Position numbers and translations under genes: made by a program. From Octopus sinensis (lineage: Eukaryota): a stretch of 64,000 nucleotides of DNA. The notes beneath the pieces were generated by a model. The model worked only from the letters and a program-made list of their open reading frames with translations, did not search any database and was not told the origin of the DNA. Location: positions 72,230,001 to 72,294,000 of the forward strand of contig NC_043003.1 in assembly GCF_006345805.1 (NCBI RefSeq), given 5' to 3'. This document shows positions 25,416-43,201 of the stretch, piece by piece (within the stretch, counting starts at the first letter, position 1; the number at the start of each line of letters is the position of its first letter).

Positions 25416-25737
25416 ATACTAAGTAATTAAGGGTTTAGCAACGATTTGCCTCACCACACACCATGCTGAGGAGGAAAATAGTCAGGTAAGACATAATTAT
25501 TTAATTTTTATGCTCTGCAATGACTTAATTCCGAAACGTACGTCCGTAGGTGACTTAATATAGAATGATTTTCGTCATTTCTTTCTCTTTTACCTGCGTC
25601 GTTTGCTTTTTTAAGTGCTTTGGTTTTACTGGGATCTTCCTTTTAAGTAGAAAGAATAGCCAAAACTTTTTGACTGCTATTTCTAAATTCTGTGTGTGGT
25701 GAAGCAAATCGTTGCTAAACCCTTAATTACTTAGTAT
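25416..25737 (+). mobile_element. inverted-repeat cassette A with degenerate hammerhead
   Basis: 46-bp arms 25416-25461 and 25692-25737 (one mismatch); GAAA CGTACG TC CGTA at about 25533-25548. Confidence 0.7.
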
Positions 25738-26134
25738 ATATATATATATATATATATATATATATATATATATATATATATATATATAATATATATATAT
25801 ATATATATATATATATATATATATATATATGCATATATATATGCATATATGTATATATATGTATGTATATATAATATATATATATATAGATATAGATAGA
25901 TAGAAAGATAGATAGACTATTATCATTAACATATATAAGTGTATACATACATAACCATATACATCTGTATGTGTGTAAATATATATATATATATATACTG
26001 TATATATATATATATATATATATATACATACAAACATATATTCATGCATACACACACACGTATATATACATATATATCAGCATACATACATACATACATA
26101 CATACATACATACATACATACATGTATATTCTTC

Positions 26135-26330
26135 AATTCTTTTACTTGTCATTTGCTGAAACACCGCCTTGAAAAGTTGTAGTCAAACAGATCGACCGTA
26201 GGACCTTTTTTTATGTTTAATACTTATTCTATCATCCTTTTGCCGAACTGCTAAGTTACGGGGACTTAAACACACCAACAGCGGTTGTCAAGCGGTGATG
26301 GTGACAAACACAGACACAAACACACACGCA
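26135..26330 (-). mobile_element. SINE S1 3' part
   Basis: Reverse complement of the S1 tail. Confidence 0.7.
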
Positions 26331-26338
26331 CATATATA

Positions 26339-26500
26339 CAGTACATCACAGAAGTATGTACACCCCTAAAAGATTATTTGCTATATTCAATATGTAGTGT
26401 GACTTACCTTGCTTTCAATGACTGCATTAACTCTTCTGGGCATAGAGTCAACTAAATTTCCCTATATAACCGATGAAATTGACCTCCATTCATCCTGAAT
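26339..26500 (+). mobile_element. Tc1-like element left end
   Basis: TA|CAGTACATCACAGAAGTATGTACACCCCT; the other end was not found. Confidence 0.5.
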
Positions 26501-27816
26501 GATGTCTTTCAATAAACCGTGTTACATTGCGTTTTTTTTTTACCTCAACCTTCCTTTTCAAGACACCCCACAGATATTCTATTGGGTTTCGGCAAATTCA
26601 CACAATCTGACTTTTTCCCCTTATATCTTTCGGGAAGATGGGTATCTTTTAATGAAAATTTATACAAATCCCTTTCCACCGGCACAGATTACGATTATAA
26701 TGAAATTCGTGAGGGGAAATTTTTTCGGGGATTTTCCCCTTTTTTTCAAACCACAGCCTTCGAAATTATGGGGTTGTGGGGGCACCTTTGTATGAAAAAT
26801 GTTTCGAAAACTTTTTTACACCTCCTCTCTCATCATCCCACTACGGACCTAATTTAGCCAATTATTTTTGCACTTCACAACCATGGGTAGAGCACTTTCG
26901 GTAAAAAATTCTTTTTAGAAATTGTTAACATTTTCAGAGCGAAAAGTGAGTGATTTAAAGGCGATTTGGCTGTTGTTTCTAGCACATCCAAAGACAACCC
27001 TCTTTATCACGTTTCTTTATCACGCTCGCATGTATTGATGTTTTTCAATATTTTCTCCCCATAAATACATGTATATGGTATAAAAAAAGGAAATTTGAGA
27101 AATTATTAATTTTTTGCAACCCCCCTGCCTACCCCCGATTGTTTCTGATTAGAAATTAAAATAATGGAGATCCTCAGAATGTCATTGCTGGGATTTATTC
27201 ACAGTGATTTTAAAAAGGTTACGAAGATGTACTTGCATAGCAAGGGACTTGATTTCAGATCGTGTACTGAAATAAAAACAATTTCAGCGTAGAAGATGCT
27301 TCTAAGCCATCCAAGAACACACAACAATCATCACTTTCACTTCAACATTAAAATTTCATTTGCACCAAAATATTTTCTTTGCTTTGAAGCGTTACTTTGA
27401 CAAAACTTCACAAAAGTGATGCAGCCCGAAGGTTTGTCAGTGAACAGCGCGCGCGCACACACACAGACACACATAATATATATATATATACTATTATTAT
27501 TACACACATACACACACACGCACACACACACACACACACACACATATATATATATATATGTATATATAATGATAAGATGAGGGAATATTATTCCAAACTT
27601 ACAGGGAAAAATTCAATTTAGAAATACTAAATCAAATTTCACAAAATAATATATATCAATTAGCAACAAACCACCTTTTATCAATTCAACAATGAAAAAA
27701 TTAAATCATGCCATTTAGAAAAAATTACATTTTATTGAAAAATTAAATATAAGATAACGCATATACCAATGATTAAGTAATGTGCAAAATAATAAAACGT
27801 ATATATTTGGTAGAAT

Positions 27817-27868
27817 AACTACACGTGTTTCGTGGCTATATTTAAGAAATATAGTCACTCTTCAGGTT
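27817..27868 (-). ncRNA. minimal type I hammerhead motif in an AT-rich pLTR-like segment
   Basis: AAC CTGAAGA GTGACTATATTT ctt AAATATAGCCAC GAAA CACGTG TA GTT: intact core, 12-bp stem II with one mismatch, palindromic stem III, GUA site. Confidence 0.85.
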
Positions 27869-40714: not shown

Positions 40715-40949
40715 AGAAGGCGGCGAGCTGGCAGAAACGTTAGCACGCCGGGTGAAATGCATAGCCGTATTTCGTCTGCCGTTACGTTCTGAGTTCAAAT
40801 TCCGCCGAGGTCGACTTTGCCTTTCATCCTTTCTGGGTCGATAAATAAAGTACCAGTTACGCACTGGGGTCGATGTAATCGACTTAATCCCTTTGTCTGT
40901 CCTTGTTTGTCCCCACTATGTTTAGCCTCTTGTGGGCAATAAAGAAATA
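40715..40949 (+). mobile_element. SINE S2 monomer with TSD
   Basis: TSD TATATTACTC(A/C)ACATTT at 40698-40714 and 40950-40966. Confidence 0.92.
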
Positions 40950-40989
40950 TATATTACTCCACATTTTCTTCGTTTATCAATAAGGTAGG

Positions 40990-41600
40990 GTGTGATTTGG
41001 GAGATTGCGATGATGATTTTTGATATGTGTAGCGTTTGTATTTCTTTGCTGTTTAAAGAGACAACAATGGAATATCCCCGTCGAAGAATACGTTCACTGT
41101 CTCTTATTTATGGGGTGATGGACATTTATAGGATCATGGACATACTCTTTTCAAAGATAAGAGCAGATCCCTGCATAGGGAATGAGATTGAAGTGTTTAG
41201 TGAGTATAGGGATTAGCTATGAAGTACACTGATTGAGGGTAATGGAAGAGCCTTGTTAGATGAAAAAGACCGAAGGTACTTTTGCATTTATCCAGTCTGT
41301 ATACAAGATGGTGGGCTTGAAAAGGTGGGAACGGACCGAAATGAAGGTTTGACGAATTTGTCTAGTGTGGAGTAATGAAACAGTGTAGTGCGGGTGTAAT
41401 GTTCACAGAATCATCAATGTTGCGATGTGTAGAGGACTGATGCTTAGTAGGATGCGTAGAGGAAGATTCTGGGAATAAGATAGAAATTCTTTTGGTAATA
41501 GAAAGGTTTGGAAGGAGGGATAGGTTTCGAGGGTAAACTGTTGTACAGCACAGGAAGTAATCTATTGCAATTTGGATAAAAGTCTTTCAGATTTTGCGTT
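40990..41600 (-). mobile_element. degenerate CR1/Jockey-group LINE remnant
   Basis: Weak pre-RT motifs (VQKYLRSFSSNKA..SISFP). Confidence 0.3.
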
Positions 41601-42186
41601 CTGGATAAAATGTGTCCATTTACCTACACATATCTTTACGTAAATTTATCTACATGCATACAAACATACTTGAATACATGTTTACACACATATACATACG
41701 TATATAATGTTTACATACATTTATATTCGATTATAAACAGCATTTAGCTGTTCAATCAGCTGAAGTACTACGGACAGGTGTTCCATTTAATATAATCCTT
41801 AGGAAAAATCAGCGTGACGAAGTGTGTAATTTGGCTAGAGCTTTGAATTACAGGTACACTTCATCTGACAAATTTCTACAGTTTCCGTCAAACCAATTTC
41901 ACCTATAAGGCTCGGATTGACTGGAATCTAAGATGGAAATAATTTATCCACGATGCCATGCCGTAAGATGAAAAACAAAACTTTGTAATTAGGAAGCACA
42001 TTTCTTAACTAACCGGTCATACTGTACCCTTACACATATATAATCATAAATTTACGTATAAACATACAGTCTTAAATTCATATAATCATATAAATATATG
42101 TATATATACATACATACATATATATATATATATATATGAGCAATAATAAATCCTTGAACGTGATATAAACAGTAGCTGCATGACAA

Positions 42187-42612
42187 TGTGAAGTATATTT
42201 GCATTTAAATGTGGCTAACCACTAAGTGTGGATGCTACTGTAGCTTGTAGCCCCAGGAGAACATCTTCTGTAGCTGGGTATTGACACACTTTCTGTGCCC
42301 TATCATTGTTTACACTTTTTCGAGATCAGTGACTTTTCGTCACTGGAAAAAGGATAAATGTATTTGCACTTGGACCCCTTCGAATCACAGACCGGTGATT
42401 GTCGTGCGCTGACGACGAGTAAATACTCAGAAACCCGGGTCCGTGAGTATCACGTTAGGTCGACGATGGGAAGGATGGCTTCCTTTTGCAAATACTGATA
42501 GGGCACAGAAAGTGTGTCAATAGCCAGCTGGAGATGTTCCCCTGGGGCTACAAGCTACAGTAGCATCCACCCTTAGTGGTTAGCCACATTTAAATGGCAA
42601 ATATACTTCACA
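42187..42612 (+). mobile_element. inverted-repeat cassette B containing a hammerhead
   Basis: About 119-bp arms 42187-42305 and 42496-42612 with few mismatches and two small indels. Confidence 0.85.
42406..42444 (+). ncRNA. minimal type I hammerhead motif
   Basis: GCG CTGACGA C GAGT aaat ACTC A GAAA CCCGGG TC CGT: intact core, palindromic stem III, GUC site after 42441, C.A mismatch at the base of stem II. Confidence 0.8.
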
Positions 42613-42814
42613 CACACACACACACACACACACATATATATATATATATATGTATGTATGTATGTGTGTATGTATATATATATATGAATGTATGTATATA
42701 TATATATACATGCATATATATACATATATACATACACACATAACACACACACACACACACACATATATATATATATATATATATAATATATATATATATA
42801 TATATACATATAAA

Positions 42815-43201
42815 TACAGTGTACATTTAAACACATAAGATTCCTGGCATAGAAAATTTTCGAAGTAACGCCGGTATTATTCTTTGCTGCCGAAAAAAAA
42901 AAACTACGCTTGCGCGGTGGATCTGAAAAATTATAATGTATAACCACGTGGCACATGCTGGATTGCATCGTACTTATATGATTAATCTAGGCGTACCTGA
43001 TGATGAAGACTTCACCTAGCAAATTATTTTATTTGCTAAAAAAAGTCAGAAACCATGGCCTAGGAGATAGATGGTAAATGTTTTTATTTTTCATTCCCTT
43101 CGAAGTTTTCTCCCTAATAGATGTTTGGACTTTGGCTGTTCCTTCTAGCGTGCCAGGAAGCCTATAACGGATACCTCTTATGTGCTTAAATGTACACTGT
43201 A
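42815..43201 (+). mobile_element. inverted-repeat cassette C with degenerate hammerhead (42997-43064)
   Basis: 25/26 arms 42815-42840 and 43176-43201; CTGATGA TGA[AGA]CTT..TAGCAAAT/ATTTGCTA..AAGTCA GAAA CCATGG CC TAGG. Confidence 0.7.

Follow-up and report, generated by a model that had tools for sequence, protein, structure and literature searches.

Insertions of Penelope-like elements (PLEs) are known for heavy 5' truncation, for an adjacent inverted and 5'-truncated copy that gives flanking inverted repeats, for a 30-40-bp tail at one end, and for a bias toward microsatellites (Craig et al. 2021, PMC8557442). Insertion into (TA)n is typical of the Hydra and Naiad clades, and in the Hydra clade (TA)n targeting is accompanied by universal hammerhead ribozymes (PMC8557442). 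An inverted pseudo-long terminal repeat (pLTR), a 31-bp tail, and trans-mobilization by pLTRs alone have been described as well (Arkhipova et al. 2013, PMC3846280). Animal non-LTR retrozymes are small (~170-400 nt), carry a type-I hammerhead but no open reading frame (ORF), and are linked to PLEs (Cervera & de la Pena 2020, PMC7229834); they have been reported as pLTR derivatives, many of which are solo monomers (Li, Clavereau & Pollet 2026, bioRxiv 10.64898/2026.07.22.740005). Here, we analyzed a 64,000-nucleotide stretch of the Octopus sinensis genome (contig NC_043003.1, positions 72,230,001 to 72,294,000, forward strand; hereafter, the window), in which four short cassettes, c1 to c4 (25416-25737, 29046-29393, 42187-42612, and 42815-43201), each combine inverted arms with a hammerhead motif. 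Our data indicate that these cassettes are probably severely 5'-truncated insertions of a Hydra-like PLE with an inverted 3' fragment, or trans-mobilized derivatives of its terminal region.

PLE insertions are the closest described system, and Hydra is the nearest clade as judged by features rather than by a tree (PMC3846280; PMC8557442). The cassettes resemble such insertions in their terminal-region hammerhead, (TA)n/(CA)n site, possible unique extension at one end, and apparent heavy 5' truncation, and differ from them in having no ORF, no second direct pLTR, a single hammerhead, and longer candidate tails (49-101 bp). With retrozymes, they share small size, the absence of an ORF, a type-I hammerhead, and a PLE link. 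Retrozymes, in contrast, are tandem direct repeats, each with a ribozyme, and form circular RNAs, whereas the cassettes are single units with inverted repeats and one ribozyme; moreover, retrozyme RNAs are described as highly self-paired (PMC7229834) and the cassette loops are not. An earlier note on this DNA had already set the cassettes apart from direct-repeat retrozymes. Self-comparison of the window revealed no direct or tandem copies of any cassette.

The four inverted repeat-hammerhead-inverted repeat arrangements reported in that note are real, given that both arms and hammerhead motifs were recovered for each of them, the c4 hammerhead in a decayed state. All four pairs of terminal arms consist of non-microsatellite sequence and measure 47, 46, 119, and 26-46 bp in c1 to c4, respectively, with a complementarity of 80-98%. 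In c1, 46 of the 47 bases of the left arm (25416-25462), a presumed inverted 3'-terminal fragment, are complementary to the right arm (25691-25737), which we take as the 3' end of the direct copy and which adjoins (TA)n. The direct copy of c2 would lie on the minus strand: its 3' end is taken to be the left arm (29046-29091), located after a (TA/TG)n tract, and the right arm (29348-29393) would be the inverted fragment; these arms are 80% complementary over 46 bp (E 2e-8 within a 400-bp stretch). The 119-bp arms of c3 are ~93% complementary with small indels, the left one (42187-42305) being the putative inverted 3'-terminal fragment and the right one (42494-42612), next to (CA)n(TA)n, being the presumed 3' terminus of the direct copy. 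Lastly, the left (42815-42849) and right (43151-43201) arms of c4 pair through a 26-bp core (42815-42840 with 43176-43201), followed by a 9-bp match further inward past a 15-bp indel; when the AT-rich flanks are counted (the left one from 42795), the arms extend to 46 bp at 89%.

The hammerheads were sought with two descriptors. One, a strict type-I descriptor, required CUGANGA, a helix II of 3 bp or more, GAAA, a helix III of 2 bp or more, UH, and a helix I of 3 bp or more; it matched 5 sites in the window versus a mean of 0.125 in 200 dinucleotide-preserving shuffles. The other, a relaxed descriptor (CUGANGA ... GAAAC followed by a palindrome and G), matched 4 sites, that of c4 among them, versus 0.032 expected. 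Descriptor matches thus exceed the shuffled controls 40- to 100-fold. In agreement with the claim of a single hammerhead per loop, strict sites fall in c1, c2, and c3, and c4 is recognized only by the relaxed descriptor; the remaining two strict sites (23661 and 27865) are the hammerheads of units without arms, described below. A looser scan that allowed one core mismatch was too noisy for use.

The c1 hammerhead (25454-25556, plus strand) is supported by both the strict descriptor (25466-25544) and folding, with its core CUGAGGA at 25466-25472, a helix II of ~60 nt, the segment GAAACGUACGUC, and cleavage predicted after 25544; the innermost bases of the left arm also form part of the 5' strand of helix I. 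That of c2 (29247-29309, minus strand; strict match 29297-29259) reads CUGAUGA-U-GCCUA..UAGGC-GAAA-CUAGAUCUAG-UA, has helices I, II, and III of 7, 5, and 6 bp, and is predicted to cleave after 29259. In c3, the motif (42394-42454, plus strand; strict match 42409-42441) comprises CUGACGA ... GAAACCCGGGUC, with cleavage predicted after 42441 and a C:A mismatch at 10.1-11.1, and its core and helix II loop resemble those of the 23661 unit. The decayed motif of c4 (42997-43060, plus strand; CUGAUGA ... GAAACCAUGGCC) fails the strict descriptor; it has an A15.1:C16.1 mismatch (C for U at 16.1) and a weak helix I, and still matches CUGAUGA...GAAAC-CAUG-G.

A short palindromic helix III (GUAC, CCGG, AGAUCU, or CAUG) is present in 6/6 hammerheads of the window. 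It is a hallmark of those metazoan and PLE hammerheads for which activity as dimers has been proposed (PMC4209133). The four traits given by that study occur together in c2, and c1 has the G10.1-C11.1 pair but not the extra nucleotide. Judging from these motifs, the ribozymes would be minimal type I hammerheads of the PLE/metazoan kind that are predicted to cleave, and a cassette ribozyme probably needs a partner to do so. Enrichment of inverted repeats around hammerheads, as tested within the window, was also evident: 4/6 hammerheads lie inside the ~14 non-microsatellite inverted-repeat loci that cover 8% of it (rough binomial P ~5e-4).

The window has ~36% G+C and is densely broken up by (TA)n, (CA)n, and related tracts. 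As can be read directly in the sequence, each cassette contacts a microsatellite at one or both ends, and a (TA)n, (CA)n, or (CT)n tract adjoins every hammerhead unit of the window. Two further observations of the earlier note also held: cassette-to-cassette comparison found no similarity beyond the ribozyme core, and there is no coding remnant, as the cassettes contain neither an ORF of more than 50 aa nor a Pfam domain. Across 22-43.6 kb, non-microsatellite stop-to-stop segments of at least 50 aa gave no Pfam match.

Three of the cassettes are bordered, on one side only, by unique sequence that reaches from the arm to the next microsatellite and may be either a tail or ordinary flank. These stretches comprise 96 bp in c1 (25320-25415, between a (TA)n tract and the left arm), 49 bp in c3 (42138-42186, between (TA)n and the left arm, beginning GAGCAATAATAAA), and 101 bp in c4 (43202-43302, between the right arm and (CA)n); the possible tail of c4 is thus on the opposite side from those of c1 and c3. 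The c1 stretch may be part of the element, and it occupies the same position as a 58-nt tail in the related locus L010 (see below). The 10-mer CAATAATAAA opens the left stretches of both c1 and c3 (25319-25328 and 42141-42150), at most 3 nt from the end of (TA)n; it occurs 3 times in the window versus 0.86 expected, and its sharing by c1 and c3 is not significant after correction. The c1 tail also resembles the 3' end of the arm-less unit at 27.6 kb (27571-27660; Smith-Waterman p ~0.003, uncorrected), a likeness that is not significant by BLAST nor after correcting for 28 comparisons. These likenesses of the left stretches may reflect a shared terminal module or chance in AT-rich DNA. A search for target-site duplications yielded one candidate, the 8-bp direct repeat TAAATACA at 42811-42818 and 43303-43310, which brackets c4 together with its right-hand unique stretch; since the left copy falls inside the extended c4 arm, we do not rely on it.

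The same arrangement is found in longer relatives. Two loci from assemblies other than that of the window, L008 (an ENA assembly) and L010, hold members, with long reverse transcriptase (RT) ORFs, of the retroelement family that is represented in the window by decayed ORF remnants (see below). L008 has an intact 685-aa ORF, a hammerhead 92 nt past the stop codon, and an element end 36 nt beyond the cleavage site, followed by a 55-nt extension on the direct copy only and then by (TA)n; immediately upstream lies an inverted, 5'-truncated copy (1020 bp, 99.7% identity) with its own hammerhead. In L010, the order is (TA)n, a 58-nt unique tail, an inverted 3'-terminal fragment (128 bp, 100% identity, hammerhead included), a direct copy that lacks its 5' part, measures ~1.95 kb, and carries a hammerhead in the 3' untranslated region (UTR), and (TA)n. 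These arrangements reproduce the structure published for PLE insertions (PMC8557442; PMC3846280). The parts of c1 and c3 follow the order of L010, i.e., (TA)n, a tail of 96 or 49 bp, an arm of 47 or 119 bp, the direct copy, and (TA)n/(CA)n. Because the ribozyme is only 36-43 nt from the 3' end in L008 and L010, their inverted fragments of at least 128 bp include the hammerhead. The cassettes fit the structure of PLE insertions if the direct copy is 275-360 bp long and the inverted fragment stops before the hammerhead. An inverted truncated copy joined 5' of a direct copy would account for the terminal arms and the unique loop, with the arms presumed to be 3' ends.

The window itself holds two PLE-like ORF remnants that the earlier note had not reported. 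One is a decayed, frameshifted RT remnant (55597-57139, minus strand) that aligns with residues 273-450 of P0127, a 685-aa full-length relative (E 5e-40); the other is a remnant of a C-terminal GIY-YIG-like domain of the same family (5388-5867, plus strand; P0127 residues 541-681, E 2e-22), which probably extends from ~3848. Pfam and PDB sequence or profile searches with the P0127 family found nothing meaningful, and the RT was identified only by a fold search: the predicted structure of P0127 (mean predicted local distance difference test score 67, RT core >85) matched retron, DRT, group II intron, LINE, and telomerase reverse transcriptases with E values of 1e-6 to 1e-4. Its C-terminal part, VYK...YIGxTE..FKxRYxxH, has no internal cysteines, is preceded by a cysteine-rich linker, and reads as a GIY-YIG-type motif. 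Family relatives in O. bimaculoides (83% identity) and O. sinensis are annotated as 'GATA zinc finger domain-containing protein 14-like', names that look like mis-annotations of retroelement ORFs. Like the Hydra clade (PMC8557442), the P0127 family has a short ORF that lacks the internal CCHH motif, targets (TA)n, and carries a hammerhead. On these features, rather than on a phylogeny, the source lineage likely resembles the Hydra clade of PLEs with a C-terminal endonuclease.

Downstream of the endonuclease remnant, the distance from its stop (5867) to (CA)n at ~6416 suggests a 3' UTR of ~550 nt, and copies of 275-360 bp would therefore carry no coding sequence. Within this interval, a degenerate hammerhead-like motif, CTGAATA...GAAAGCTT (6183-6210, plus strand), lies 316 nt past the stop and ~205 nt before the (CA)n tract, a spacing akin to the ribozyme-to-end distance of the cassettes.

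Taken together, these observations point to one retrotransposition event by PLE machinery per cassette, each of which would have originated from a PLE or a PLE-dependent RNA. The endonuclease would nick a (TA)n or (CA)n microsatellite, and only the last 275-360 nt of the element RNA, that is, the 3' UTR/pLTR with its hammerhead, would be reverse-transcribed. A shorter second copy of the same 3' end (26-119 nt) would then, as commonly happens with PLEs, be joined in inverted orientation on the 5' side, and an extra unique tail would sometimes be left at one outer end. Because both outer ends would be element 3' ends, they read as terminal inverted repeats; because the cleavage site is 141-213 nt from the 3' end, beyond the reach of arms of 26-119 bp, there would be one hammerhead, placed in the loop. 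The architecture would recur across unrelated sequences because the integration mechanism produces it, not because the inserts share ancestry. LINE-1 twin priming is similar in that one event links an inverted segment with a direct segment that is 5'-truncated; there, however, the inverted segment is copied from a more 5' portion of the RNA, whereas both parts of a cassette appear to end at the same 3' terminus.

The geometry of the units is consistent with this scheme. In c1 to c4, the cleavage sites lie 193, 213, 171, and 141 nt from the 3' end, a fairly constant spacing, and the stretch that separates the hammerhead core from the inversion junction is irregular, at 3, 50, 103, and 147 nt. 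This irregularity fits arbitrary truncation points and not a designed hairpin with a central self-cleaving loop. Whole cassettes fold strongly (z -3.5 to -22.7), owing only to their arms, and since the loops alone show no unusual RNA structure (z -0.4 to -3.0), the arms look like plain duplications.

In addition, two hammerhead units in the window, overlooked by the earlier note, share the layout of the cassettes: the ribozyme sits toward the 5' side, and a microsatellite marks the 3' end. The unit at 23623-23847 (plus strand, hammerhead 23661-23694) lies between (CA)n-type and (CT)n tracts, and an inverted-repeat search there found none; the unit at 27571-~27900 (minus strand, hammerhead 27865 to 27820), whose 3' end adjoins (TA)n at 27570, has no convincing arms. 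A third such arm-less unit lies within a (TA)n tract of Argonauta hians (L001, 14211-14543). Their cleavage sites are 153 and 249 nt (window) and 202 nt (Argonauta) from the 3' end. Directly left of the (TA)n tract of the Argonauta unit, we also observed a 95% perfect palindrome with 58-bp arms (14017-14133).

To look for copies elsewhere, the six units of the window were compared by sensitive BLAST with ~65 kb from four loci, namely L001 (Argonauta hians), L007 (Octopus sinensis), L009 (O. bimaculoides), and L008, and this comparison revealed nothing except the c1 terminus in O. bimaculoides. There, the c1 terminus plus 24 bp beyond the arm recurs at L009 7585-7651 with 77-81% identity and adjoins a (CTAT)n(TA)n tract, an assembly gap hiding the remainder. 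Because of this recurrence, we assign c1 to a dispersed family. Metagenome contigs were also scanned with the arm sequences; one of the two scans was empty, and five exact 19-mer matches were set aside as probable chance, that in L002 (GC 0.55) not extending past the 19-mer.

Several points weigh against a PLE origin of the cassettes. First, no cassette is joined by sequence to any ORF-bearing PLE, and self-comparison of the window revealed no similarity between the cassettes and the two PLE-like remnants. Copies shorter than a 3' UTR of ~550 nt would be expected to lack ORF continuity, but they leave the link to PLEs an indirect one. Second, Pfam and PDB sequence searches miss the P0127 family, and the endonuclease assignment comes from reading its motif. 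Third, the Rfam hammerhead models do not recognize these ribozymes: none matched anywhere in the window at the gathering score, nor at E<=10 on 42300-42560 (c3) and 29150-29345 (c2), and the only matches at E<=10 over 24-45 kb were to microRNA families on microsatellites. The latter (mir-297, mir-3149, mir-466, and mir-1277; e.g., 34789-34861 and 42608-42687) are sub-gathering, low-complexity artefacts on (TA)n/(CA)n. The ribozyme call accordingly rests on descriptors and not on a curated model. Minimal PLE-type hammerheads are poorly represented in the Rfam hammerhead models. Fourth, three ribozymes (c3, c4, and the 23661 unit) do not have the usual G10.1-C11.1 pair. Fifth, at 49-101 bp, the candidate tails are longer than those in the literature (30-40 bp) and may be no more than unique DNA that separates two microsatellites. 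Sixth, all seven hammerhead units are short (225-430 bp), with their 5' limit at most ~150 nt from the ribozyme. Finally, the ends of c4, TA|CAGTG...CACTG|TA, also resemble those of Tc1/mariner elements.

The uniform shortness of the units bears on the best-surviving alternative, according to which the cassettes are complete, discrete, ORF-less non-autonomous retroelements, their terminal inverted repeat included, that derive from pLTRs, are related to retrozymes, and use PLE RT in trans. Random truncation of a 2-3 kb element should leave some longer copies, which makes discrete non-autonomous units a live alternative. The narrow size range of the cassettes (320-430 bp; direct part 275-360 bp), a hammerhead that is always near the 5' side, the lack of an ORF remnant on any of the seven units, and the dispersal of the c1 family speak for it, as do the mobilization of unrelated inserts in trans by PLE pLTRs alone (PMC3846280) and the many solo monomers among pLTR-derived retrozymes (bioRxiv 10.64898/2026.07.22.740005). 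On the other hand, arms are missing from three units that are otherwise laid out alike, no two cassettes agree in arm length or in the position of the junction, and tandem copies were not encountered; nor do the loops show the high degree of self-pairing that is described for retrozyme RNAs (PMC7229834). Since ORF-bearing relatives yield the same inverted arrangement, a special element class is unnecessary, and we consider this alternative unlikely, if still worth keeping in view.

To a variant of this idea we give only a slim chance, namely that the cassettes represent an undescribed cephalopod class of full-length, ORF-less hairpin-hammerhead retroelements with a constant, functional terminal inverted repeat, on which several unrelated families would have converged. 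In such elements, a long stem might, for example, present the 3' end to a PLE reverse transcriptase while the ribozyme trims the transcript. The earlier note had left the choice between a minimal PLE insertion product and a separate hairpin/ribozyme class. The former is favored by the retroelement remnants of the window, the layout of L008 and L010, and the published structure of PLE insertions; the latter gains no support, as arm length ranges from 26 to 119 bp, the junction distance ranges from 3 to 147 nt, and arm-less units exist.

It is very improbable that the cassettes are miniature inverted-repeat transposable elements (MITEs) with true terminal inverted repeats and TA target duplications that contain or have captured a hammerhead fragment. 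The cassettes resemble MITEs in size, terminal inverted repeats, the absence of an ORF, and AT-rich targets, and c1 and c2, besides c4, can also be read with flanking TA. A flanking TA is, however, uninformative inside (TA)n tracts, c3 ends without one, and no transposase domain was found in 22-43.6 kb. Unlike MITEs, all of the cassettes carry a hammerhead, and there are arm-less siblings with the same hammerhead-to-end layout, a candidate tail at one end, and no transposase partner that we could see. We rate this alternative low because a loop hammerhead would be required in each of four unrelated families, for which the chance expectation is far below 1, and because arm-less siblings exist. 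As for a mere coincidence of inverted repeats and hammerhead-like motifs in repeat-rich, AT-rich sequence, the misses of the Rfam models and the abundance of microsatellite-driven inverted repeats across the window would allow it, yet the shuffling controls effectively refute it, the arms are non-microsatellite sequence with 80-98% identity, and their co-location with hammerheads has a P of ~5e-4, leaving it a negligible prospect. The cassettes are, most likely, additional examples of known PLE insertion products, and a new kind of mobile element is not indicated.

Other repeats are also present in the window. Directly right of c4 lies a non-LTR retrotransposon (a long interspersed nuclear element, LINE; 43624-46331, plus strand) with Exo_endo_phos_2 and RVT_1 domains, i.e., an apurinic-type endonuclease and an RT, split by a frameshift into two ORFs. 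Its best relative is a protein of the octopod Argonauta hians (50% identity), and searching public assemblies for exact matches to this LINE protein returned no record. A repeat of ~400 bp with a tRNA-like 5' part, which we read as a tRNA-derived short interspersed nuclear element (SINE), has copies at 10271-10641, 16238-16699, 16997-17433, 22762-23166, 26154-26363, 29694-30123, and 48062-48297, including an inverted pair at 16.2-17.4 kb; fragments of it match copies in contigs of Octopus sinensis and O. bimaculoides at 78-94% identity, and together with the LINE they place the window in an octopod. The same family is found in Argonauta hians, where a second hammerhead (L001, 7543-7572, minus strand) lies ~60 nt upstream of a tRNA-like SINE copy, in what may be either a nested insertion or a composite element. 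A second repeat family, in which no hammerhead was found, forms tandem and inverted arrays of ~190-bp units (11292-12972, 14276-14472, 20734-20948, 38194-38453, 40716-40955, 51682-51892, 52685-52910, and 61565-62206). In addition, an isolated, near-perfect 74-nt hairpin (24234-24307; 86% self-complementary), with weak sub-threshold matches to microRNA families, may represent either a small foldback element or a microRNA-like locus.

If the cassettes are indeed truncated PLE insertions or their trans-mobilized derivatives, they would illustrate how Hydra-like Penelope elements appear in an octopod genome once reduced to a few hundred bases, and they would account for a recurring pattern of inverted repeats and ribozymes that annotators would call MITEs or leave unclassified. 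Only if the hairpin reading with constant boundaries were true would they represent a new element class. As truncated PLE insertions, they would add cephalopods to the hosts that accumulate hammerhead-bearing debris in microsatellites. If transcribed, the near-perfect stems of 47-119 bp would form double-stranded RNA, the relevance of which to animals with such extensive RNA editing is a matter of speculation.

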